A stretch of DNA of 64,000 nt, taken from the IMG/VR virus record IMGVR_UViG_3300042473_001265, positions 276,173 through 340,172 of that record; one strand, given 5' to 3'. The notes beneath the pieces are model-generated. The model saw only the letters and a program-made list of their open reading frames with translations. It was not told the DNA's origin and did no database searches. The position numbers and the translations under genes were made by a program. How positions within the stretch are numbered: position 1 is the stretch's first letter; every line of letters starts with the position of its first letter. Positions 12,307 through 61,377 of the stretch are shown one piece after another.

Positions 12307-14625
12307 ATGTCAACAATCAATGTAGTAAAACGAAGCGGTCGGCGCGAGATCATGGCCATCGAAAAATGGCAAACCCAAGTAGCAAAAGTGTGCCAAGGCA
12401 TAGCAGATGTCAGCCAAAGTATGGTGGAGATCAAAGCACAATTGCATTTCTACGATGGTATCACCACCAAAGAAATTGACGGTATCACACTTAGAGCTAT
12501 TGTGGATTTGATCGATGTTGAATCAAATCCTGATGTGGGCCATACCAACTATCAATATGTGGCCGGCAAACAAAGACTTAGCATGTTGAGAAAAGATGTG
12601 TACGGCAGCTATGATGTGCCATCACTGTACACGATTGTAAAAAAGAATGTGGCCACTGGCCTGTACACTCCTGAGCTGCTGGAATGGTACACTGAAGATG
12701 ATTGGAACCGAATGGATTCTTTCATTGACCACAGCAAAGATGAACTGTATGGTTATGCAGCCATTGAACAGCTGATTGAAAAATATCTAGTTAAAAATCG
12801 TTCAACAGGACAAATTTATGAAACTCCACAAATTAGATACATGGTCGCGGCCGCTACTGTATTTCACTCAGAAGAACCGAACACAGCGAGAATGCGCTTC
12901 ATCAAAGAATACTACAACGCTGCCAGTGATGGGCTATTTACTCTTGCTACTCCTGTTCTTGCTGGGCTTGGTACTCCTACGAAACAATTTTCATCTTGCG
13001 TTCTTATTAGATCAGATGATGATTTGGATAGTATTTTCGCGTCTGGTGAAATGATGGCCAAGTATGCCAGCAAGCGAGCTGGCATTGGATTAGAGATTGG
13101 TAGATTGCGTCCACTAGGTTCGCCCATTCGTGGTGGTGAGATCATGCACACAGGTATGATACCATTCTTGAAGAAATGGTTTGGAGATTTGCGTAGTTGT
13201 AGTCAAGGAGGTATTCGTAATGCTAGTGCTACTGTGTTTTACCCTATTTGGCATCATCAATTTGATGATCTTATTGTACTCAAGAACAATCAAGGGACTG
13301 AAGAGACCCGAGTTCGACACATGGATTATGGAGTCGTATTGTCAGCATTCTTCTGGAGACGATTTAAAAACAAAGAAGACATAACATTCTTTGATCCTAA
13401 CGAAGTGCCCGACTTGTATCAAGCGTTCTATAGTAATACAGAACTATTCGAAGAACTTTATGTAAAGTATGAAAAGCAATCTGGCCTGCGTAAGAAAACT
13501 ATGAGTGCTGAAGAAGTATTTAAATCAGGCATCTTGAAGGAGCGCACAGACACTGGACGCATCTATCTAGTGTTCATTGACAATGTGATGAAGCAAGGAC
13601 CGTTTGATCCTGAATACCACACCATTTACCAAAGTAACCTTTGTTGTGAAATACTTTTACCTACTCGTTCTTTTAAGCGTCTCGATGATGCTGATGGGCG
13701 CATCGCTTTATGCACTCTTGGTTCAATTAATTGGGGTGCCTTCCGTAATCCTGAAGATATGCGCAGGGCTTGTCGCATTCTACATAGAAGCCTCAATAAT
13801 ATACTGGACTATCAAGATTTCCTATCAATTCAGTCGAAGTTGAGCAACGATGAAATCAGACCACTGGGAATTGGTATCACCAATCTTGCCTACTGGCATG
13901 CCAAGCGTAGTTTGAAATATGGTGAGAAGGATGCTCTGGCAGAAGTCAAAACTTGGATGGAACATCAGACATATTATCTAACTGAGATGAGTGTTGAACT
14001 GGCTGAGGAGCGAGGCCGATGTGAAGGCAGTGATCACACACGCTATGGCCAAGGACAGTTTCCCTGGGAACTTCGTGCAGTAGGAGTCAATGAACTGACT
14101 GATTTTACCCCGGAACTTGAATGGGAAACACTTCGTGCTAGAATGAAAGTGAGTGGCGTTCGTAATGCTACTAATGGAGCAATTGCTCCTGTTGAATCCA
14201 GTTCGGTGGCCATCAACTCAACCAACGGCATTGAAATGCCCATGAGCCTGATCACTGTGAAAGAAAGCAAGGCCGGCAGTTTGATTCAAGTGGCGCCCGA
14301 ATACAACCGGTTGAAAAACAAATATCAACTGATGTGGGCACAAAAAGATTGTGATGGCTACTTGAAAACAGCCGCAGTACTAGCTGCCTATGTGGACCAA
14401 AGCATCAGTACCAACACATTCTACAATCCTGCACACTTTGCAGATCGTAAGGTACCAACAACTCTAATTGCTCGGAACTTGATGCAGTCGCACTACTGGG
14501 GTCTAAAAACTTTCTACTACAGCCTGATCAACAAAGCAGGTAGCAAAGGTCAAGACGAAGTTGTTGCACCATTGGAAGCGATTGAGTTTGATGATCAAGA
14601 AGATTGCGAGGCATGCAAGCTCTAG
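12307..14625 (+). CDS. nrdA: Ribonucleotide reductase class Ia alpha subunit
   Basis: ATP-cone, FSSC, SNLCCE, LCTL, TFYY and C-terminal CEAC; no intein-size insertion. Confidence 0.97.
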   Translation: MSTINVVKRSGRREIMAIEKWQTQVAKVCQGIADVSQSMVEIKAQLHFYDGITTKEIDGITLRAIVDLIDVESNPDVGHTNYQYVAGKQRLSMLRKDVYGSYDVPSLYTIVKKNVATGLYTPELLEWYTEDDWNRMDSFIDHSKDELYGYAAIEQLIEKYLVKNRSTGQIYETPQIRYMVAAATVFHSEEPNTARMRFIKEYYNAASDGLFTLATPVLAGLGTPTKQFSSCVLIRSDDDLDSIFASGEMMAKYASKRAGIGLEIGRLRPLGSPIRGGEIMHTGMIPFLKKWFGDLRSCSQGGIRNASATVFYPIWHHQFDDLIVLKNNQGTEETRVRHMDYGVVLSAFFWRRFKNKEDITFFDPNEVPDLYQAFYSNTELFEELYVKYEKQSGLRKKTMSAEEVFKSGILKERTDTGRIYLVFIDNVMKQGPFDPEYHTIYQSNLCCEILLPTRSFKRLDDADGRIALCTLGSINWGAFRNPEDMRRACRILHRSLNNILDYQDFLSIQSKLSNDEIRPLGIGITNLAYWHAKRSLKYGEKDALAEVKTWMEHQTYYLTEMSVELAEERGRCEGSDHTRYGQGQFPWELRAVGVNELTDFTPELEWETLRARMKVSGVRNATNGAIAPVESSSVAINSTNGIEMPMSLITVKESKAGSLIQVAPEYNRLKNKYQLMWAQKDCDGYLKTAAVLAAYVDQSISTNTFYNPAHFADRKVPTTLIARNLMQSHYWGLKTFYYSLINKAGSKGQDEVVAPLEAIEFDDQEDCEACKL

Positions 14626-51483: not shown

Positions 51484-52059
51484 ATGGCAAACCAAACAGA
51501 TACAGAATTCAACAAAGACCACACACAGGCCTTGGCCGACATAGGCATGTATGTGCTGATGGGAGAAATCAATGCTGAAACAGTCAAACCGGTGATTGAA
51601 TGGATTTTACACGAAAACTTTGTGTCCAAGAAAAAACGCAAAGAACTCTTGTTGATGATCTGTAGTGAGGGCGGCGATGTACAAGATGCATTTGCCTTGA
51701 TTGATGTGATGCGCAGCAGTCTTATTCCTGTAAAGACAGTGGGCTTGGGAATGATTGCCAGTTCGGGACTGTTGATTTTTCTTGCTGGCAGTGCTGGACG
51801 CCGTGTGTTGACTCCAAACACTTCGATACTGAGTCATCAATTCTCTTGGTACAACGAAGGCAAGGTTCATGAGTTATTTGCCACTATGAAAGAGTTTGAA
51901 CTGACTCAACACCGTATGGTCAAGCACTATCAAGAATGCACTGGGCTTGATGAAGAAAACATTCGTAAAAATTTACTACCACCACATGATGTATGGCTCA
52001 CTGCCGAAGATGCATTAAGACTCCGCATCTGCGATAGCATTTCAATACTTCAGCGCTGA
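51484..52059 (+). CDS. clpP: Divergent ClpP-like protease
   Basis: ICSEGGDV, IASSG (Ser), SHQF (His), DVWLTAEDAL. Confidence 0.85.
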   Translation: MANQTDTEFNKDHTQALADIGMYVLMGEINAETVKPVIEWILHENFVSKKKRKELLLMICSEGGDVQDAFALIDVMRSSLIPVKTVGLGMIASSGLLIFLAGSAGRRVLTPNTSILSHQFSWYNEGKVHELFATMKEFELTQHRMVKHYQECTGLDEENIRKNLLPPHDVWLTAEDALRLRICDSISILQR

Positions 52060-53700: not shown

Positions 53701-54291
53701 ATGCCCCATCTAGTCCCAATGGTAATCGAGCAAACCTCCAAAGGCGAGCGCAGTTACGACATCTACAGCCGTCTGCTCAAAGATCGTATTGTGATGTTGG
53801 ATACCGAAGTCAGTGATCACAGTGCCAGCTTGATCGTTGCACAAATGTTATTTTTGGAGAGTGAAAATCCCGACGCAGATATCCTGTTTTACATCAACAG
53901 CCCAGGCGGTGTTATTACCGCAGGTATGAGCATTTATGACACAATGAACTTTATCAAATGCGATGTCAGCACCATTGTGATGGGACAAGCCTGCTCAATG
54001 GGGTCATTTTTGGCACAGGCTGGCACAGCGGGCAAACGACTGATGCTGCCACATGCACGACACATGATACACCAACCGTCGGGTGGTGCCCGTGGCATGG
54101 CCAGTGACATTGAAATCAGCTACAAAGAAATCATGCATATGAAAAAGATGCTGACCGATCTGTATGTCAAGCACAACAGCCGTGGCAAAACCTATGAGGA
54201 ATTTGAGCGCGACATGGACCGAGACACCTTTATGAGTGCAGCGGAAGCGCTGGATTATGGGTTGATTGATAAAATTGTGGAAAAGCGCTGA
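53701..54291 (+). CDS. clpP: ATP-dependent Clp protease proteolytic subunit
   Basis: [38 protein letters not shown]. Confidence 0.96.
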
Positions 54292-54299
54292 AATAACAG

Positions 54300-54328
54300 T
54301 TGACCAATAAATCCATTTGTCGTATAAT
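54300..54328 (+). promoter_or_regulatory. Sigma70-type early promoter
   Basis: TTGACC-17 nt-TATAAT. Confidence 0.88.
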
Positions 54329-54352
54329 TAACACTTAGCAACAAGGAGTCGT

Positions 54353-54744: not shown

Positions 54745-54773
54745 GTTGACTCAAAATGCTCTTTTTGCTATAA
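54745..54773 (+). promoter_or_regulatory. Sigma70-type early promoter
   Basis: TTGACT-17 nt-TATAAT. Confidence 0.9.
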
Positions 54774-54804
54774 TAGTGGTATAGTAAGTAAAAAGGAGCG
54801 TGAA

Positions 54805-54993
54805 ATGGACTACACCAAACACCTGGAACTTGTCACCAATTGGGGCATGTACCACAACATCCAGGGCGGCATGCTGGAAACTTTACAGGCCATGCAGGCA
54901 TGTGGGTCAGACGAACTGCACCGCGACGAGCGCCTGGCCGTGCGTGAATTGATGGCAGGCTTTGGCCAATTGCTGGCGCCAGTTGACCAATAA
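54805..54993 (+). CDS. Hypothetical protein
   Basis: Start moved to ATG 54805; ends VDQ* across the next -35. Confidence 0.7.
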   Translation: MDYTKHLELVTNWGMYHNIQGGMLETLQAMQACGSDELHRDERLAVRELMAGFGQLLAPVDQ

Positions 54994-55011
54994 TTCCCAA
55001 AGTGCTATAAT
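54983..55011 (+). promoter_or_regulatory. Sigma70-type early promoter
   Basis: TTGACC-17 nt-TATAAT. Confidence 0.9.
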
Positions 55012-55041
55012 AGTGGCATAGTAAGTAAAAAGGATGTCAAT

Positions 55042-55371
55042 ATGAACGCAACTGAACTGGACTCTAAAGCCGCACCGTTTGCATGGCTCGCCGCCAGAGA
55101 TGCAGCAATAAAAAGTTATGCTGCCAGCACATTGTACACTGAAGCTCAAAAAATTCGTGCAGAGCGCATGAAGTTGGGACTGGAGATGGTGTACTCCGTT
55201 AAGAGTGCTTTCCTCACTTATCGCAAGAAGTTTGTGACTATTAAATTGGATCAAGCTCAAGTGCGCGACCGTAAGACACTGGCTTTGCTGGAACAAGATT
55301 ATACTGCACAAGGCAACATTAGCAAAGTAATTACCGCACAAGGCATCACTTATCGTATTGCCCGCAGTTGA
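55042..55371 (+). CDS. Hypothetical protein
   Basis: Own promoter and SD; stop TGA lies in the next -35. Confidence 0.75.
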   Translation: MNATELDSKAAPFAWLAARDAAIKSYAASTLYTEAQKIRAERMKLGLEMVYSVKSAFLTYRKKFVTIKLDQAQVRDRKTLALLEQDYTAQGNISKVITAQGITYRIARS

Positions 55372-55396
55372 CTAATAATTCCCAATCGGTTATAAT
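55368..55396 (+). promoter_or_regulatory. Sigma70-type early promoter
   Basis: TTGACT-17 nt-TATAAT. Confidence 0.9.
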
Positions 55397-55426
55397 AGTG
55401 GCATAGTAAGTAAACAGGAGCAGACA

Positions 55427-55681
55427 ATGATTGTTAAAACAGGTGATGTGATTCGCAGTTACGATTTCAAACCCATGCTGGGTCGTGAAGATTGCTTTGT
55501 GGAAGGTATGGTAATCGAAGCCACTGCCGAGCAAGGTTACGATGCTTATAAAATCCGTGTGACTCGGGACTCCTGGTCAGATGCTGAAGACAAAGGTCGT
55601 TTTGGCAAAGTCATCTTTGTGCCTGTGGCAGTGGCCTACAACGACTTTCCGGGTCGTGTGATGAATCTGAGCCGTGTCTAA
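55427..55681 (+). CDS. Hypothetical protein
   Basis: SD CAGGAG. Confidence 0.75.
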   Translation: MIVKTGDVIRSYDFKPMLGREDCFVEGMVIEATAEQGYDAYKIRVTRDSWSDAEDKGRFGKVIFVPVAVAYNDFPGRVMNLSRV

Positions 55682-55686
55682 AACGG

Positions 55687-55715
55687 TTGACTAATATTCA
55701 CCAAAGTGCTATAAT
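55687..55715 (+). promoter_or_regulatory. Sigma70-type early promoter driving the paralogue array
   Basis: TTGACT-17 nt-TATAAT. Confidence 0.9.
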
Positions 55716-55745
55716 TAACACTTGAACAGCAACAAGGAATCGACT

Positions 55746-55946
55746 ATGACACGATATGTTCACATTGTTTATGTCCACCCCGTAGAACTTGGTCTGCCCA
55801 ACCTGTCGAAGGTCAAGTCGGAACAAGAATTTGACACTTGGAAACAGGCAATGGGGTATGTTGAACACTTCAATGCTCACGCAAAAGACGGTGTTGAGGC
55901 CGTGTACTACGGCAGGGTCAATGATGCCACAGGAGAATTAGAATGA
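55746..55946 (+). CDS. Hypothetical protein
   Basis: Start moved to ATG 55746 after AAGGA. Confidence 0.7.
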   Translation: MTRYVHIVYVHPVELGLPNLSKVKSEQEFDTWKQAMGYVEHFNAHAKDGVEAVYYGRVNDATGELE

Positions 55947-56155
55947 ACATGAGCTATTGTATGTTTCAAAATACCGCAACTGATCTGCGGCACTGTCTTG
56001 AGAGCATGGATGCAGCCGAGACCCTGGCTGAACTGGAACTGAGCCGCGACGAAAAACGCAGCTACGATCTCATGCGAGAATACTGCGAAAACTTCCTGAA
56101 CATTGCTGAACGACTGGATGATGCTGACGCTGACGCTGTTGGAGTTGCGAAATGA
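55943..56155 (+). CDS. Hypothetical protein (MSYCMFQNT motif)
   Basis: ATGA-coupled. Confidence 0.7.
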   Translation: MNMSYCMFQNTATDLRHCLESMDAAETLAELELSRDEKRSYDLMREYCENFLNIAERLDDADADAVGVAK

Positions 56156-56397
56156 ACGAACGAATTCTAGAACTGTTGAAACAGGCATCTAAACTTGCCA
56201 ACACCGATGACAACAAAGATATTGACCGCAATTTTGATATGATTGTGGCAGAAAAGTTCGCCGAACTGATTGTGAAAGAATGTTTGAATATTGTTATGCT
56301 TACACACAACGAAGGCAATGCAGATAATTTTTCATACGACGATGCACTTGATCATGTGTTTAGTAACATGAAAGAACATTTCGGAGTTGAATCGTGA
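56152..56397 (+). CDS. MNERI/KFAELIV/HFGVE family paralogue 1
   Basis: All three conserved blocks present. Confidence 0.85.
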   Translation: MNERILELLKQASKLANTDDNKDIDRNFDMIVAEKFAELIVKECLNIVMLTHNEGNADNFSYDDALDHVFSNMKEHFGVES

Positions 56398-56597
56398 AAG
56401 TGACCCATCCCTACACCTTGATAAAGCGGCGTATTGATGTTGTGGCCCGAGTGCCAGCCTGGGCGGTTGGAGAGATAAACAAAGGCGATCTGGTCATACG
56501 TCTGGATGCTCAAACTGTTTTTTTGCGAGATAAAGGCAGATACAAGGTGGGCGAATCCTACACCGAGTTCTGGGGCTACACAGGAGAAAATGCATGA
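56394..56597 (+). CDS. Hypothetical protein
   Basis: GTGA/ATGA-coupled; not a family member. Confidence 0.65.
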   Translation: MKVTHPYTLIKRRIDVVARVPAWAVGEINKGDLVIRLDAQTVFLRDKGRYKVGESYTEFWGYTGENA

Positions 56598-56923
56598 ACA
56601 AACGAATTCAACAACTTGCCGAACAGGCTACATCTTACAATAACAGTGATGGTTGGCTTTTTGATAAAGAAAAGTTCGCTGAACTGATTGTGGCTGAATG
56701 TTTGGCACAGGTTGCCCGGGTGGATGACATGTTGGAAGATGAGCCTGCACAACATGCGGCAGTGGCCTGGGTGGCCCGGTCGATTGCCGACCATTTTGGA
56801 GTTGCGAAACCCCAGTCAGACTGGGATCAAGAAGCAGCTGAATTTATTGCCGCAGAGGATAAAAAGGTTGCCAGCAGATACGGATATGTCCCAAAACTTC
56901 ATCCATCAGAATGGAAAGACTAA
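56594..56923 (+). CDS. Family paralogue 2, with C-terminal extension
   Basis: MNKRIQQLAEQA, EKFAELIVAEC, DHFGVAK. Confidence 0.85.
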   Translation: MNKRIQQLAEQATSYNNSDGWLFDKEKFAELIVAECLAQVARVDDMLEDEPAQHAAVAWVARSIADHFGVAKPQSDWDQEAAEFIAAEDKKVASRYGYVPKLHPSEWKD

Positions 56924-57138
56924 TGAACGAACGAATTAAAGAACTTTATACACAAGTCTGTATGGAACAGAATCTTCCGTTCACACTTGAACATAACAGT
57001 GCGTATATGTTAGATGCATTTGCAGACAAGTTCGCCGAGTTGATTGTGCGGGAATACTCTTACGATGTGATGAATTTACACGGGGCGAGTCCAGAGCGAG
57101 TAGCGATGGCTGCTAAACATTGGGAAGTTGAACTATGA
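56923..57138 (+). CDS. Family paralogue 3
   Basis: MNERIKEL, DKFAELIVREY, KHWEVEL; start moved to 56923. Confidence 0.8.
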   Translation: MNERIKELYTQVCMEQNLPFTLEHNSAYMLDAFADKFAELIVREYSYDVMNLHGASPERVAMAAKHWEVEL

Positions 57139-57365
57139 ACCTACGAATTAAACAACTGGCTGAACAATGCTGGGACAAGCGTCCAGAAGGCCAATTACAT
57201 TTTGACAACGAAAAATTCGCCGAATTGATTGTTCAGGAATGTATATCAGTTATTAATACTAAGGCTACCGAAGTTCCTGTTGAAGATGAATATGAAAGAA
57301 TGTGGAAGATGGGAACGGAATTTGCTGTATATCAGATTGATAAACATTTTGGAGTTGAAGAATGA
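57135..57365 (+). CDS. Family paralogue 4
   Basis: MNLRIKQLAEQC, EKFAELIVQEC, KHFGVEE. Confidence 0.85.
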   Translation: MNLRIKQLAEQCWDKRPEGQLHFDNEKFAELIVQECISVINTKATEVPVEDEYERMWKMGTEFAVYQIDKHFGVEE

Positions 57366-57622
57366 ATCAACGAATTCGAGCTCTTGCTGAAAAAGCAAAC
57401 ATTGAGTTTACCTATGACCCAACAGAGACACCTGTCAGAGCATTTGTCGAGTGTTGGGAAGATGATCTTGAAAAGTTCGTTGACATGATTGTGAAGGAAT
57501 GTATCGCTCAATGTGAAAGCCAGAACACAGTCATTACCACAGATATAGGCACAGAAGCGTGGGGAGAAATTTCTGATGCGGTAGAGCAGATTAAACGACA
57601 TTTTTACGGAGTTGAAGAATGA
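57362..57622 (+). CDS. Family paralogue 5
   Basis: MNQRIRALAEKA, EKFVDMIVKEC, HFYGVEE. Confidence 0.85.
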   Translation: MNQRIRALAEKANIEFTYDPTETPVRAFVECWEDDLEKFVDMIVKECIAQCESQNTVITTDIGTEAWGEISDAVEQIKRHFYGVEE

Positions 57623-57855
57623 ACTTACGAATTCAACAACTTGCCGAACAGGCTAGGCAATATGCTGAATCCAAAATGCATCTAACCGGATGGAACTATA
57701 TTGCCGAGTATAACGAAAAGTTCGCCCAGTTGATTGTGCGGGAATGTATGGATGCAGTGGGTGATGGACCAATGCAAAGACCAGAAATTCAAAGGATCAA
57801 AGCCAAGTTTGGGGTTGAGTATTACAAGCCAATTGAAAAAGCATTTGGGAGTTGA
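57619..57855 (+). CDS. Family paralogue 6
   Basis: MNLRIQQLAEQA, EKFAQLIVREC, KFGVE. Confidence 0.85.
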   Translation: MNLRIQQLAEQARQYAESKMHLTGWNYIAEYNEKFAQLIVRECMDAVGDGPMQRPEIQRIKAKFGVEYYKPIEKAFGS

Positions 57856-57858
57856 ATC

Positions 57859-58254
57859 GTGAACATAACTGTATACAGCTGGAATCTACTAAAAGAATCC
57901 TGTGAGCGTTGGTCGGTGCCCAGAGACTTTGCCGACCCCATGCTGAACTATCTGGTGTATGGTTATGCGCCAGGTAGTTGTTTCTCTGCGGTGTTGGCCA
58001 ATGACTTTTTTAGAGCAATTGGATCCAGCCATCCCAGTAACACTGTGGAAGCATTCAAGGCCTTGTCTGGTTGGATCCAAGATACTATGCCTCGTGAAGC
58101 ATTCGGCAGCTACGAAACTGTTCGACAGTGGTGTCAGCTTGATGCTGGGACTCGCCGAGCGATCCTTGAACGTCAGGGGCTGATCTATACCCAGCATGAA
58201 GAAGTGTTCAAGATTCTACGGAATGAGCATGCTGTGGAACCTGTATTATACTAA
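57859..58254 (+). CDS. Hypothetical protein
   Basis: GTG start after GGAG; PGSCFSAVLANDF. Confidence 0.7.
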   Translation: MNITVYSWNLLKESCERWSVPRDFADPMLNYLVYGYAPGSCFSAVLANDFFRAIGSSHPSNTVEAFKALSGWIQDTMPREAFGSYETVRQWCQLDAGTRRAILERQGLIYTQHEEVFKILRNEHAVEPVLY

Positions 58255-58268
58255 CACGGAGTTGAACC

Positions 58269-58568
58269 ATGATGCAAGATTTCATGTATGAGCAAACTCG
58301 AGTCACTGTGACCGACACATGGGATGACGAGATATCACAGTCTGTGATTGCAGCCGCAGTCAATGCGCCTCGAGTCAGCTACAGGATTTATTATTCCCAG
58401 GACAACCTGACCCGTAGGATTTTTGTTCATCGCGGCTGGCCCAACTGCACACCCGCAGAGATTGACGCATTGTTGGGCTTGGGATTTGTATTTGCACAAC
58501 CCGGTGATGCAGACAACATTCCCAACCAAGCCGTAGAGGAACATGAAATTGAAGGAATCGAACCATGA
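58269..58568 (+). CDS. Hypothetical protein
   Basis: SD GGAG; 99 aa. Confidence 0.65.
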   Translation: MMQDFMYEQTRVTVTDTWDDEISQSVIAAAVNAPRVSYRIYYSQDNLTRRIFVHRGWPNCTPAEIDALLGLGFVFAQPGDADNIPNQAVEEHEIEGIEP

Positions 58569-58687
58569 AAGTCTACAAGCACAGCAACGGTAAAACAAGT
58601 CTATTTCCTGAACACATTCCCCAGGGTTGGGTAGTTTTTCTAAATCCCAACACATTTGACATTGTATGGCGTAGGAGTGGATCATGA
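58565..58687 (+). CDS. Small hypothetical protein (40 aa, MKVYKHSNG...)
   Basis: ATGA-coupled at both ends. Confidence 0.6.
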   Translation: MKVYKHSNGKTSLFPEHIPQGWVVFLNPNTFDIVWRRSGS

Positions 58688-58926
58688 CAATTGAACAAGA
58701 ATATCTAGAAAAATACATAAATCCTCGGATTAAAAAATTGTTTGAACAGGCCAATGGACAATTTTACATTTCTCCTGGCAACCAAACTCCGCGATTCGTG
58801 TTTGAACACAACAACATGCTTGATTTTATTGACTTGATTGTGCAGGAATGTGCCCGGATTGCTGACACAGCAGAGCCCTATCAAACCAGCGATTTGATTT
58901 TGAAACACTTTGGAGTTGAATCATGA
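58684..58926 (+). CDS. Family paralogue 7, with N-terminal extension
   Basis: INPRIKKLFEQA, DLIVQEC, KHFGVES. Confidence 0.8.
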   Translation: MTIEQEYLEKYINPRIKKLFEQANGQFYISPGNQTPRFVFEHNNMLDFIDLIVQECARIADTAEPYQTSDLILKHFGVES

Positions 58927-59042
58927 CCGAAGGAGAACGAGCAGGACGCTGGGCTATGATATATCTCTATACGGCGTTGTTTGCTTTATGGTTTAATATT
59001 GTTGCCATTGCGGTTTGGCACATCCGGGAGTGGTTTTTATGA
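58923..59042 (+). CDS. Small membrane peptide (39 aa)
   Basis: ATGA-coupled at both ends; one TM. Confidence 0.55.
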   Translation: MTEGERAGRWAMIYLYTALFALWFNIVAIAVWHIREWFL

Positions 59043-59269
59043 ACGAACGAATTCGAGAACTTGCCGAACAGGCTGGAATTGAATTTACCTATGACCCAAC
59101 TGAGACTCCTATGCGAGCTTTTGTGGAATGTTGGGAAGATGAGATGGCAAAGTTCGCCCAGTTGATTGTGCAGGAATGTGGTCGAGCATTGAATCCCATG
59201 TTGCGTGACATGATCAGTCGCGGCCAGGCCGTAGACATGATTAAACAACATTTCGGAGTTGAAGAATGA
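59039..59269 (+). CDS. Family paralogue 8
   Basis: MNERIRELAEQA, AKFAQLIVQEC, QHFGVEE; start moved to 59039. Confidence 0.85.
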   Translation: MNERIRELAEQAGIEFTYDPTETPMRAFVECWEDEMAKFAQLIVQECGRALNPMLRDMISRGQAVDMIKQHFGVEE

Positions 59270-59778
59270 AATCACATTATACCTGCGGAAAATGTAACCT
59301 GTTGTTAGAAGCAGGTGACAAACATTTTTTTACTCACAGTCTTAAAAAAGTATCTAATAATAGTAATTTAACAGTTATTGGACAATGTAAAGCCTGCGCC
59401 AAACAATATGCTACAAAATGGCGTAGTGACATTAAGGCCAAAGGATTAGTTCGTAGTCAAAAGACAACAATAGCATTAGCAGGTGCAGTTACAGGAACCG
59501 TGTATGTTATCGGTACTGATAGTCCCGGAGCTCCTTATAAAATTGGAATAACTTCGGGATCAGATACTCGAAAAAGAAAAGCAGCATTACAAACAGCACA
59601 CTGGATGGATCTTAAAGAAGTTTGGAAATCAGACTTGTTGTACCGAGCAGATATTATTGAAAAAAAATTACACAAACATTTTGAAAAGAAATGGGTGAGG
59701 GGAGAATGGTTCAATATCACAAAAGACGATATTACCAATATTCCAAACTTAATAGAACATTTTGGTGTGGAAGAATGA
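59266..59778 (+). CDS. Zn-finger plus GIY-YIG (T5orf172-like) nuclease
   Basis: CGKC...CKAC; VYVIG...YKIGIT...KRKAALQT...EKKLH...RGEWF; ends EHFGVEE. Confidence 0.82.
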   Translation: MKSHYTCGKCNLLLEAGDKHFFTHSLKKVSNNSNLTVIGQCKACAKQYATKWRSDIKAKGLVRSQKTTIALAGAVTGTVYVIGTDSPGAPYKIGITSGSDTRKRKAALQTAHWMDLKEVWKSDLLYRADIIEKKLHKHFEKKWVRGEWFNITKDDITNIPNLIEHFGVEE

Positions 59779-60005
59779 GTGACTCCATCATACCCGTAAC
59801 TCAGTTTGCTACCAGCTTCACTGGCGTGCTGCCCATTGCCACTGTGGGCAAAGGTGTTGTCAAACAGGAAAGTTGGCAACAGACCACTTATCCCAATGGT
59901 GCCACGGTCACCAGGATTTATCACAACAGCATTGAAGTGTATGATAACCGTGCAGTTGTGACCCGGCACAATGAACCAAACATCATTGACATATTGATCA
60001 AGTAA
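59775..60005 (+). CDS. Hypothetical protein
   Basis: Start moved to ATG 59775 (ATGA overlap). Confidence 0.6.
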   Translation: MSDSIIPVTQFATSFTGVLPIATVGKGVVKQESWQQTTYPNGATVTRIYHNSIEVYDNRAVVTRHNEPNIIDILIK

Positions 60006-60047: not shown

Positions 60048-60076
60048 TTGACCATTAATTCCCGTTCTGCTATAAT
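60048..60076 (+). promoter_or_regulatory. Sigma70-type early promoter
   Basis: TTGACC-17 nt-TATAAT. Confidence 0.9.
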
Positions 60077-60104
60077 ATACACATAAACAGCAAACGGAGC
60101 AGAC

Positions 60105-60263
60105 ATGCAGATGACACCGGAACAGAAGGCAGTAGAGATTGAGCGTTTGACAGCTGAATACGAGTGGCTGACTCTCATCAGCTGTAACGGTCGTTACGGT
60201 GGCAACATTTTTATCAAGCAGGCTGCTATTTCTGAAAAATTGCGTGAGTTAGCCAACGATTGA
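60105..60263 (+). CDS. Small hypothetical protein (52 aa)
   Basis: SD GGAG; stop TGA lies in the next -35. Confidence 0.65.
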   Translation: MQMTPEQKAVEIERLTAEYEWLTLISCNGRYGGNIFIKQAAISEKLRELAND

Positions 60264-60288
60264 CCATTAATTCCCATTCTGCTATAAT
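60260..60288 (+). promoter_or_regulatory. Sigma70-type early promoter
   Basis: TTGACC-17 nt-TATAAT; nearly identical to 60048, including the leader. Confidence 0.9.
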
Positions 60289-60318
60289 ATACACATAAAC
60301 AGCAAACAGGAGAGCCAA

Positions 60319-60699: not shown

Positions 60700-60855
60700 A
60701 TGACTATTCAACATTGGGATTATTTAAAAACTGCAATGGAAGTGCTGGAGTCTGGCCAAGCCAGTGACGCCAACACCATCAAAATACTCAAGATCATGAG
60801 CGAAATCTGTGCAATGAACGCACAAAAGATGACACAGCTTCTGGTTGACCAATAA
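60700..60855 (+). CDS. Small hypothetical protein (51 aa)
   Basis: Ends VDQ* across the next -35. Confidence 0.55.
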   Translation: MTIQHWDYLKTAMEVLESGQASDANTIKILKIMSEICAMNAQKMTQLLVDQ

Positions 60856-60873
60856 TTGCCATTCTGCTATAAT
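60845..60873 (+). promoter_or_regulatory. Sigma70-type early promoter
   Basis: TTGACC-17 nt-TATAAT. Confidence 0.9.
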
Positions 60874-60903
60874 TAATACTTAAACAGCAACAAGGAGTCG
60901 AAA

Positions 60904-61377
60904 ATGGGTACACGAAGTCGAATTGGTGTCATGCACGGTGACGTTGTTAAGAGTGTTTACTGTCATTGGGATGGCTACCTGGAGCACAATGGCCGGATCC
61001 TGCAAGAGCATTATGGCTCAGATCAATCTCCTAAAGCAAATCATCTTGTAGCACTGGGCGACATCAGTAGTCTGGACAAAGAGATTGGTGAGAAGCATCC
61101 GTTCAGTCGATTTGACACTGACATGTCAGACGAAGCGTATGAGAAACTCTACGGCAACATGACCACTTTTTACGGTCGTGACCGTGGCGAAGAAGGCGTG
61201 GACTTCAAAGTGGCACACACCTTTGCTGCCTTCCTAGATCAGGTTGAGGGCTGTGGCGCAGAGTACTACTACATCATGAAGGACGGTGTGTGGTACTGTG
61301 GTAGCCCTGACAAGGGTAGTAAGCTGGTGGCTCTCTCAGAGGCCTTGGCTGCAATTGGGGAGACTGAACATGCGTAA
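60904..61377 (+). CDS. Hypothetical phage protein (MGTRS...YCHWDGY motif)
   Basis: SD AAGGAG after promoter. Confidence 0.8.
   Translation: MGTRSRIGVMHGDVVKSVYCHWDGYLEHNGRILQEHYGSDQSPKANHLVALGDISSLDKEIGEKHPFSRFDTDMSDEAYEKLYGNMTTFYGRDRGEEGVDFKVAHTFAAFLDQVEGCGAEYYYIMKDGVWYCGSPDKGSKLVALSEALAAIGETEHA

Follow-up and report, generated by a model that had tools for sequence, protein, structure and literature searches.

The analysed window is a 64,000-nt stretch of the lake-water jumbo phage genome IMGVR_UViG_3300042473_001265 (positions 276,173 to 340,172 of the record). An array of 17 small genes at 55722-60005 forms a single-promoter operon of 4.3 kb, in which 13 of 16 gene junctions are 4-nt ATGA/GTGA overlaps. 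Most genes are stitched together by one almost invariant stop/start junction of about 30 bases. Eight of the genes belong to a very large uncharacterised phage family (at least 7,848 clusters, with no Pfam or PHROG match). The features are as follows; L-numbers designate other contigs used in the comparison, of which L091, L093 and L094 are close relatives.

55687..55715 (+), the only strong sigma-70-like promoter site ahead of the array (TTGACT-17-TATAAT, 11/12), part of a 48-64-nt promoter/leader repeat; no other 11/12 site was found until 59986.
55722..55946 (+), first operon gene (74 aa, weak phrog_3627 match), ending GGAG-N7-ATGA into the next gene; absent from L093 and L094.
55943..56155 (+), non-family gene (70 aa, phrog_8760/26791-like) ending AVGVAK, encoded GGAGTTGCGAAATGA; its tail repeat at 56129-56152 is the crossover partner of 56786-56809.
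56152..56397 (+), family member 1 (81 aa, tail KEHFGVES); its junction at 56376-56398 contains the 16-mer GGAGTTGAATCGTGAA.
56394..56597 (+), non-family cassette (67 aa) with a GTG start in a GTGA overlap, ending GGAG-N7-ATGA.
56594..56923 (+), family member 2 (109 aa) with an internal HFGVAK at 56786-56809 followed by a 38-aa extension, which in L094 is joined directly to the 55943-type gene.
56923..57138 (+), family member 3 (71 aa, tail HWEVEL, weakened SD GGGAAG).
57135..57365 (+), family member 4 (76 aa, HFGVEE), the member modelled by AlphaFold2; its head recombined with the member 6 tail in L094.
57362..57622 (+), family member 5 (86 aa, HFYGVEE); its first 141 nt are 79% identical to member 8.
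57619..57855 (+), family member 6 (78 aa); its in-frame FGVE is encoded GGG GTT GAG with no start after it, and the gene then runs into a second junction copy, out of frame, and ends FGS-stop.
57841..57863 (+), out-of-frame junction copy, 21 of 22 nt identical to 56376-56397, supplying the stop of member 6 and the SD plus GTG start of 57859-58254; cassette homology to L010 begins here.
57859..58254 (+), non-family cassette (131 aa, no Pfam or PHROG match), conserved next to the member-6 type gene in L091 and L094.
58255..58271 (+), intergenic junction copy (reading H-G-V-E-P-stop in another frame), the predicted RBS of 58269-58568; homology to the L002 cassette starts at 58258.
58269..58568 (+), non-family cassette (99 aa, ending EGIEP); its homologue in L020 ends KEHFGVEE.
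58565..58687 (+), 40-aa cassette ending in GGAGTGGATCATGA, the left crossover site of the member 7 insertion/deletion.
58684..58926 (+), family member 7 (80 aa, HFGVES), absent from L094 exactly between two junction copies.
58923..59042 (+), 39-aa hydrophobic mini-ORF cassette, shared with L029 at 79% nt identity, junctions included.
59039..59269 (+), family member 8 (76 aa, HFGVEE).
59266..59778 (+), putative homing endonuclease with a CxxC...CxxC Zn-ribbon-type region and a T5orf172/MUG113 domain (170 aa, 35% GC); its tail EHFGVEE is encoded without GGAG.
59775..60005 (+), last operon gene (76 aa), the conserved right anchor of the array in L091-L094, where different cassettes precede it and there is no nuclease.

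The sequence observations of the preliminary description, i.e., a recurring junction at the gene ends whose GGAG precedes the next start, were confirmed. GGAGTTGAA occurs 8 times in the window against 0.59 expected, and none of 100 shuffles reached 8. Seven of the eight copies lie in the array, at 56383-59263, and the whole 340-kb genome has 13 copies. GGAGTTGAATCGTGAA lies at 56383-56398, in frame as G-V-E-S-stop with a GTGA overlap, and recurs at 57848-57863, where the frame reads F-G-S-stop and the motif is thus out of frame. GGAGTTGAACCATG lies at 58258-58271, between the stop of 57859-58254 and the ATG at 58269. The GVAK ending of 55943-56155 and the EHFGVEE ending of the nuclease gene were also as described. 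Two corrections were necessary. The tail of the nuclease is encoded GGT GTG GAA GAA, and it carries the peptide and 20 of 23 junction bases, but not the GGAG itself. Its domain, described as GIY-YIG, is T5orf172/MUG113, a branch of the GIY-YIG superfamily, and not the canonical PF01541. A second assembly, L001, has the identical array sequence, with all 8 differences located at 61236-61308, so the odd junction copies are not assembly errors.

No strong internal promoter (no 11/12 site inside 55716-59985) and no convincing terminator was found in the array. The SD role of the junction is inferred from sequence alone. The GGAG sits 7 nt before the ATG, and the phage's own genes place GGAG 5-8 nt before the ATG. 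Among the junctions examined in relatives, GGAG-N7-ATG was found at 162 of 257 and the ATGA overlap at 179 of 257. In 99 family members from other phages, with proteins only about 35-45% identical, the HFGVEE tail is almost always encoded in the same way: CAT 98/99, GGA 99/99, GTT 96/99 and GAA 97-99/99, against backgrounds of 66%, 27%, 41%, and 76%, respectively, and TGA 97/99. Free synonymous change in GGAG, which had been named beforehand as an observation that would speak against the SD reading, was therefore not found. The head of the next gene is equally fixed, with AAC 93%, CGA 91%, and ATT 94%, against 36%, 22%, and 71%. The joint is larger than the tail, a block of about 32 nt running into the first five codons of the next gene. 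Fixation of CAT, GTT, and CGA goes beyond what SD pairing needs, and recombination alone does not explain it. Junction copies persist out of frame (57841-57863; G000 121986-122201) and intergenically (58255-58271; G000 about 122399). In the AlphaFold2 model of member 4 (pLDDT 90), H-F is placed at the end of the last helix and GVEE in coil.

Gene order is not fixed. L091, L093, and L094 carry different cassette sets, with crossovers inside the tail/junction repeats and in a central family block. L094 lacks 56152-56809, by crossover between the two GGAGTTGCGAAA tails, and lacks member 7, by crossover between GGAGTGGATCATGAC and GGAGTTGAATCATGAC. It also has a member 4/member 6 chimera joined in the central KFAELIV block. 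In L093, 15 cassettes are replaced by 3, with breakpoints 22 nt into a head and at an ATG. In the group of L002, L020, L021, and L015, the cassette order is permuted and homology starts at GGAGTTGA. Cassettes are shared with unrelated backbones at 70-79% nt identity and start at junction copies, and unrelated ORFs carry the junction or are preceded by it. More distant relatives of this jumbo phage (L083 and L085) have no array at this locus, so the comparison rests on a few lake-phage contigs. Exchange is inferred from these assembled sequences and not from experiment or read-level data, and the metagenome contigs were confounded by the abundance of the family.

The putative nuclease gene scored 41.2 bits with MUG113 (cut-off 22.3, E 2.5e-10) and 34 bits with T5orf172 (cut-off 20) over residues 77-163, and the motif pattern VYVI, YKIG, R, E, EWF is visible in its sequence. 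Genes of this type have a separate DNA-binding module, usually a CapR-like Zn finger (PMC10448857). Here, C7xxC10 and C41xxC44 lie ahead of the nuclease domain, but no profile for CapR, DUF723, or DUF4397 matched in Pfam at E<0.1. The gene behaves as a passenger. It is absent from L091/L092, L093, and L094, which share orf76 (87-95% aa identity) and other array parts (86-97% nt identity). It occurs in three other, unrelated contexts, L087, L088, and L089, with 77-87% nt identity confined to 59239/59258/59261-59778, i.e., junction plus ORF. Its G+C content is 35%, against 44.5% for the array.

The region is best explained, with fairly good confidence, as an array of promoter-less cassettes, with one early-type promoter at 55687 followed by 17 small, probably translationally coupled genes. 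In this view, the genes are joined by a shared junction block of about 32 nt, with the consensus CATTTCGGAGTTGAAGA-ATGA-ACGAACGAATT, which would do three things at once: encode the C-terminal HFGVEE of a huge family of small helical phage proteins (helical as predicted), carry the Shine-Dalgarno GGAG 7 nt before an ATG that overlaps the TGA stop, and encode the MNERI start of the next member. Because the block is nearly identical in every copy and in many phages, it would work as portable homology, together with a 37-nt central family block. Recombination between copies, within one genome or between co-infecting phages, would delete, duplicate, permute, and import whole ORFs, each arriving already equipped with a ribosome-binding site and a coupled stop/start. 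Upstream ORFs reading into a junction in frame would acquire the FGVE tail, while those entering in the +2 frame would end at the TGA inside GTTGAA, giving FGS or FRS endings. The T5orf172 gene would be one such cassette, a mobile gene of the homing-endonuclease type that has landed between member 8 and the last gene. The anatomy, the codon fixation, the cassette polymorphism, and the crossover positions were seen directly in the sequences, whereas a causal role of junction identity in the exchanges, SD use, translational coupling, and cleavage by the nuclease are inferences. The interpretation given in the preliminary description was thus supported in part: the junction as SD and as recombination joint and the nuclease as a passenger homing endonuclease are supported, but its alternative proposal, that the nuclease supplies breaks driving the shuffling, is not.

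Among other explanations, it is possible, although unlikely, that the synonymous-site conservation reflects an RNA hairpin, in which GAGUU would pair with AACUU of codons 7-8 and AAU of the start region with AUU of codon 5, hiding the SD and AUG until the upstream ribosome melts it and so enforcing coupling. The hairpin appears in the minimum-free-energy fold of family-to-family junctions, and it can form in 87% of cells across 53 junctions, against 23-54% when the partners are slid. However, z-scores are weak (from -1.9 to +1.7), RNAalifold predicted no consensus structure, covariation is no better than in shuffles because the columns hardly vary, and non-family cassettes lack the 3' arm.

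Slightly less probable is that the junction is only a translation signal, a dual-coded ribosome-binding site and stop/start overlap optimised and inherited by tandem duplication, with rearrangements arising by random illegitimate recombination and selection keeping those at gene boundaries. GGAG-N7-ATG matches the general SD spacing of the phage, the A/T-rich spacer and the early codons are features expected of efficient initiation, and homology breakpoints in phages fall at gene boundaries generally. Across 78 loci, 27 of 183 breakpoints lie at junction-type starts and 114 at other boundaries. Per boundary, the junction-type is only about twice as breakpoint-prone (odds ratio about 2, p=0.005, from a crude gene caller), so selection for intact genes could explain part of the pattern. 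On the other hand, the mapped crossovers lie inside 15-37-nt blocks shared by both parents, and the one in the central block yields a chimeric protein and not a clean gene boundary, which is the signature of homology-guided exchange. Persistence of junction copies where they encode nothing also speaks against this explanation.

It is similarly doubtful that the array-associated nucleases cut at or near the junction, with repair of the breaks driving both their own homing and the shuffling of neighbouring cassettes. Two different nuclease families carry the tail and sit at array borders, T5orf172 in 4 contexts and GIY-YIG immediately left of the array in 7 of 7 loci of the L002 group. A 32-nt sequence shared by thousands of phages would be an ideal homing target, and nucleases at boundaries of exchange are documented for T5orf172 genes (PMC10448857). 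Nevertheless, L091, L093, and L094 and most of the 80 loci show shuffling without any recognisable nuclease, arrays without one are shuffled just as much, and the local nuclease copy has a weakened tail.

Very unlikely is a peptide signal (for degradation, sorting, or partner binding) selected at the protein level, with nucleotide conservation secondary: although H and F are nearly invariant, unrelated proteins end in the tail in frame (the T5orf172 gene, GIY-YIG genes, the homologue of 58269-58568, and small membrane ORFs), the nuclease keeps the peptide with changed codons, and two ClpP-like genes lie 2-4 kb upstream, against it speak the fixed synonymous sites, the out-of-frame and intergenic copies, the predicted position of GVEE outside the fold, the GGG GTT GAG of the internal FGVE not followed by a start, and the decayed tail QFEFEK of the L087 orthologue of the nuclease.

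Of the systems already described, PeSL promoter-early stem-loop cassettes of T4-type phages (Arbiol et al. 2010, PMC2839356; Comeau et al. 2014, PMC4122927) are also short conserved regulatory sequences repeated at the boundaries of small non-essential ORFs in hyperplastic regions. Indels and replacements between related phages break in the repeats, as was found here, so each ORF moves with its own expression signal. The window has PeSL-like promoter repeats flanking the array (repeat families D1 and D3), but the junction itself has no promoter or terminator. It is a predicted Shine-Dalgarno plus overlapping stop/start lying inside coding sequence within a single operon, tied to one protein family and conserved at synonymous sites across very divergent phages. 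Free-standing T5orf172/GIY-YIG homing endonuclease genes of phages (ICP1, T5-like, T4 Seg; Barth et al. 2023, PMC10448857) share with the gene found here a C-terminal T5orf172 domain, low G+C content, presence or absence between close relatives, occurrence in unrelated genomes with homology limited to the gene, and possibly an N-terminal Zn-finger-type region, here suggested by the cysteine pattern alone. The putative endonuclease gene of the array is, however, inserted among dispensable small genes and not next to essential ones, is flanked on both sides by the array junction, and carries the C-terminal peptide of the family. In integron arrays, promoter-less ORFs likewise accumulate behind one promoter, each bounded by a conserved recombination sequence, with content highly variable between relatives. 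Here, neither an integrase (without a dedicated search of the genome) nor an attC-type structured site was seen, folding of the junction showed no significant structure, and the exchange looks like short-homology recombination at a joint that doubles as coding sequence and predicted RBS. The linker or boundary-sequence model of modular phage evolution (Susskind and Botstein; lambdoid boundary sequences) proposes conserved short sequences between functional modules as crossover points, and was largely displaced by illegitimate recombination plus selection; in the array, the linker is explicit, about 32 nt long, and measurable in hundreds of copies. Translational coupling through ATGA overlaps, with the SD inside the upstream gene, is a general feature of bacterial and phage operons. 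The 4-nt overlap and the SD 7 nt upstream within the preceding ORF are found here as well, but the same junction sequence is reused at most boundaries and shared across phages, instead of being idiosyncratic to each gene pair.

The whole IMG/VR virus record is 340,172 bp long and about 98% complete, and the window represents its last 64 kb (276173-340172). The GC content is 44.6%. The virus is a jumbo phage found in many lake-water metagenomes. A class Ia ribonucleotide reductase alpha subunit coded at 12307-14625 of the window is about 60% identical to those of Xanthomonas phages BUDD and X1 and 55% identical to that of Ralstonia phage RSP15, all jumbo or large phages, and these are the nearest cultured relatives seen for any gene checked. 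Just upstream of the array of small genes, two ClpP-like protease genes (51484-52059 and 53701-54291) flank a 516-aa minus-strand gene; the second is 64-66% identical to those of the jumbo relatives L083 and L085. Any link between these proteases and the C-terminal tail of the array proteins is pure speculation. L083 and L085, which were found through the 516-aa neighbour, have no array at this locus and could only show that the array is lineage-specific.

The observation made in the preliminary description holds, and every coordinate given there is correct. The motif GGAGTTGAA occurs 8 times in the window against 0.59 expected; no shuffled sequence reaches 8, and seven of the copies lie in the array. 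The whole genome has 13 copies, clustered where members of the gene family lie. A second assembly from another sample has the identical array sequence. One correction is needed, as the EHFGVEE tail of the nuclease is encoded GGT GTG GAA GAA, which keeps the peptide and 20 of 23 junction bases but not the GGAG. The main features are as follows.

55687 to 60005, + strand: the array of 17 genes, starting from a strong promoter-like site at 55687
56383-56398, + strand: 16-mer junction copy
57841-57863, + strand: out-of-frame junction copy, in which the 16-mer recurs at 57848-57863 and the reading frame gives F-G-S-stop
57859-58254, + strand: cassette that follows the out-of-frame copy
58255-58271, + strand: intergenic junction copy (motif at 58258-58271)
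58269-58568, + strand: cassette that follows the intergenic copy

Of the 16 junctions between the array genes, 13 are 4-nt ATGA/GTGA overlaps. No other 11/12 promoter site and no convincing terminator were found inside the array. Eight genes form a paralogous family with an MNxRIxxLAEQA start, a central KFAELIVxEC block, and an HFGVE(E/S) end, and four more members lie elsewhere in the genome. Interspersed are unrelated small ORFs and, second to last, a 170-aa protein with two CxxC pairs and a T5orf172/MUG113 domain (E 2.5e-10, above the gathering score). The G+C content of its gene is 35%, against 44.5% for the rest of the array. The phage's own genes place GGAG 5-8 nt before the ATG, and GGAG-N7-ATG is thus a plausible SD. 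The conserved head ACGAATTC contains the palindrome GAATTC in many members (consensus ATGAACGAACGAATT followed by C/A), as at 57374-57379, 57631-57636, and 59051-59056 of the window and in most family heads in other phages.

On both sides of the array there are eight copies of a 48-64-nt promoter/leader repeat (54300-54347, 54746-54793, 54983-55030, 55368-55415, 55687-55734, 60048-60095, 60260-60307, and 60845-60892), each ahead of a small gene. The repeat reads TTGACY-17-TATAAT, then AACAGCAA..AGGAG..ATG, and resembles PeSLs. Two close relatives, L093 and L094, lack 55396-55943, so that the 55368-type leader is joined directly to gene 55943. A metagenome contig shows the same joint (55738 to 55943 via GTTGGTC). 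A second mini-array lies outside the window, at 121801-122700 of the genome record (G000). It holds two family members, the second with a frameshifted tail that keeps GGAGTTGAAGAATGA, followed by several 20-40-aa hydrophobic ORFs. One of these ends YHGVDP with an ATGA overlap, and another is preceded by an intergenic TTTGGAGTTGAACTATGA. L091, a further close relative, has a homologous 39-aa ORF inside its array.

Pfam and PHROG scans of the family members gave nothing above noise. No hit was found in 50,697 deposited phage genomes either by tblastn of a member or by megablast of the array, while the nuclease found only one weak hit, to a haloarchaeal virus. The family is nevertheless enormous in metagenomes, with at least 7,848 clusters at 90% identity, all hypothetical and unnamed, and more than 411 stretches in IMG/VR. 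In 80 loci examined it forms arrays of up to 13 members per 12 kb. Summed metagenome contig depth rises 10-50-fold over the conserved head, central, and tail blocks of family members (56132-56275, 56996-57139, and 59012-59299) in four lake runs, which shows how common these nucleotide blocks are among co-occurring phages. An AlphaFold2 model (pLDDT 90) predicts a short helix, a hairpin, and two long helices, with H-F closing the last helix and GVEE in coil. A Foldseek search of this confident model against the PDB gave no match with E<=0.001, and a feature search of the ESM Atlas returned only unnamed viral clusters. Literature searches for the peptide motifs and for coupling-cassette arrays found no prior description.

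The junction is conserved as DNA. The codons of 99 HFGVEE tails from other phages, whose proteins are only about 35-45% identical, were compared with those of the family bodies.

Codon use in 99 HFGVEE tails from other phages, with the background in the family bodies
His: CAT 98/99; background 66%
Gly: GGA 99/99; background 27%
Val: GTT 96/99; background 41%
Glu: GAA 97-99/99; background 76%
Stop: TGA 97/99; background not applicable

The next start overlaps the stop as ATGA in 179 of 257 members, and GGAG lies exactly 7 nt before it in 162. The head of the next member is equally fixed, with AAC in 93% (background 36%), CGA in 91% (22%), and ATT in 94% (71%). The conserved unit is therefore a block of about 32 nt straddling the gene boundary, larger than was recognized in the preliminary description. 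An FGVE that is not at a junction (57808-57819) uses GGG GTT GAG. The intact nucleotide motif persists out of frame (57841-57863, and 121986-122201 of G000) and between genes (58255-58271, and about 122399 of G000). Free synonymous change in GGAG, which had been named in advance as grounds for rejecting the interpretation, was therefore not found. Members without a downstream start still use GGA (5 of 5), but this sample is too small to separate SD use from descent.

The gene order is not fixed. A search with the last operon gene found the close relatives L091/L092, L093, and L094, with 86-97% nt identity in shared parts. Their arrays differ cassette by cassette, and base-level comparison places the crossovers in the repeats. 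L094 joins the 55943-type gene directly to the extension of family member 2, by a crossover between the two GGAGTTGCGAAA tails at 56129-56152 and 56786-56809. It lacks member 7, between GGAGTGGATCATGAC (58674) and GGAGTTGAATCATGAC (58912), and it has a chimera of the member 4 head and the member 6 tail joined in the central block (57209-57245 and 57714-57750). L093 replaces 15 cassettes with 3, with breakpoints 22 nt into a head and at the ATG of the last gene. At 57734-57862, the +1 frame of member 6 reads ...ITSQLKKHLGVES-stop, which looks like the 3' end of another family member fused out of frame behind member 6's own FGVE. It appears to be a deletion scar, and it is shared by L091 and L094, the members of which also end EKAFGS.

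An unrelated phage group shows the same pattern. In its loci L002, L020, L021, and L015, with 83-91% nt identity in the flanks, the array sits between conserved backbone genes, its cassettes are permuted, and homology begins exactly at GGAGTTGA..ATG. Window cassettes also occur on unrelated backbones with 70-79% nt identity, and the homology starts at the odd junction copies, namely at 58258 (L002), 57839 (L010), and 58903 (L029). This explains the out-of-frame and intergenic copies, which are the 5' junctions that came with the cassettes 57859-58254 and 58269-58568. Across 78 loci, however, junction-type boundaries are only about twice as likely as other boundaries to be homology breakpoints (27/225 against 114/1758, p=0.005, from a crude gene caller), and this statistic is not used as the main argument. 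The metagenome contigs gave no clean population variants, as they were dominated by family members of other phages, with depth peaks on conserved blocks and loose ends at 56594, 59039, and 59270. A few of their joints match the arrangements of L091 and of L093/L094, but with sides only 20-36 nt long.

In relatives, unrelated ORFs also end in FGV(E/K), such as the homologue of 58269-58568 in L020, small membrane ORFs, and a GIY-YIG protein. The latter is a 112-aa product (PF01541) ending LNTFGVK with the junction, and its gene (for example L021:5663-6001) sits immediately left of the variable array, after a Toprim-like gene, in 7 of 7 related loci (L002, L015, L020, L021, L029, L051, and L077). 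The junction contains stops in two of its three frames, which accounts for both the FGVEE endings and the FGS or FRS endings.

Orthologues of the putative T5orf172 nuclease with 75-83% aa identity occur in the loci L087, L088, and L089. Their nucleotide homology to the window is confined to the junction plus the ORF, and the flanks are unrelated. L088 and L089 carry the gene inside family arrays with canonical tails, while L087 has no family member nearby and a decayed tail. The gene is absent from L091, L093, and L094. Its predicted Zn-finger plus T5orf172 architecture and its behaviour match the T5orf172 homing endonuclease genes described in ICP1 and other phages (PMC10448857). It is best read as a passenger cassette, and nothing shows that it drives the shuffling, because nuclease-free arrays shuffle too.

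The interpretation offered in the preliminary description is thus supported in part: the SD role, the recombination joint, and the passenger status of the nuclease gene agree with the evidence, but a nuclease supplying the breaks does not have support. The junction is a real nucleotide-level element, dual-coded as the C-terminal peptide, the plausible SD, the stop/start overlap, and the N-terminal head. That cassettes are exchanged at this element, together with a central family block, is shown by the comparative data, whereas translational coupling and nuclease activity are inferred. An SD-occluding hairpin is possible, but alignment folding gave no consensus structure and covariation equals that of the shuffles. 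Much less likely, though not excluded, the junction of about 32 nt could be a dedicated exchange site of an integrase-free, integron-like cassette system spread across freshwater phages. In this view, the tail-bearing T5orf172 and GIY-YIG nucleases at array borders would recognize or cut it, which would let them, and any ORF flanked by the junction, home into every phage that carries the family.

The closest known system is PeSL-mediated modular shuffling (PMC2839356, PMC4122927), in which promoter/terminator cassettes are shuffled through conserved regulatory repeats. The array differs from it in using a translational instead of a transcriptional signal, as a ribosome-binding, stop/start junction embedded in coding sequence would let promoter-less ORFs plug into an existing operon and be expressed at once. 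The junction and its protein family are extremely common in uncultured phages, yet undescribed in Pfam, PHROGs, or the searched literature. The junction gives a concrete, countable linker sequence with which to revisit the old question of whether phage mosaicism uses preferred crossover sites, and shows where a T5orf172 homing-endonuclease-type gene rides along. In practice, the motif is a marker for accessory-gene arrays in metagenomic phage contigs, and it warns annotators about the shared C-terminal peptides, frameshifted tails, and chimeric members that such arrays generate.
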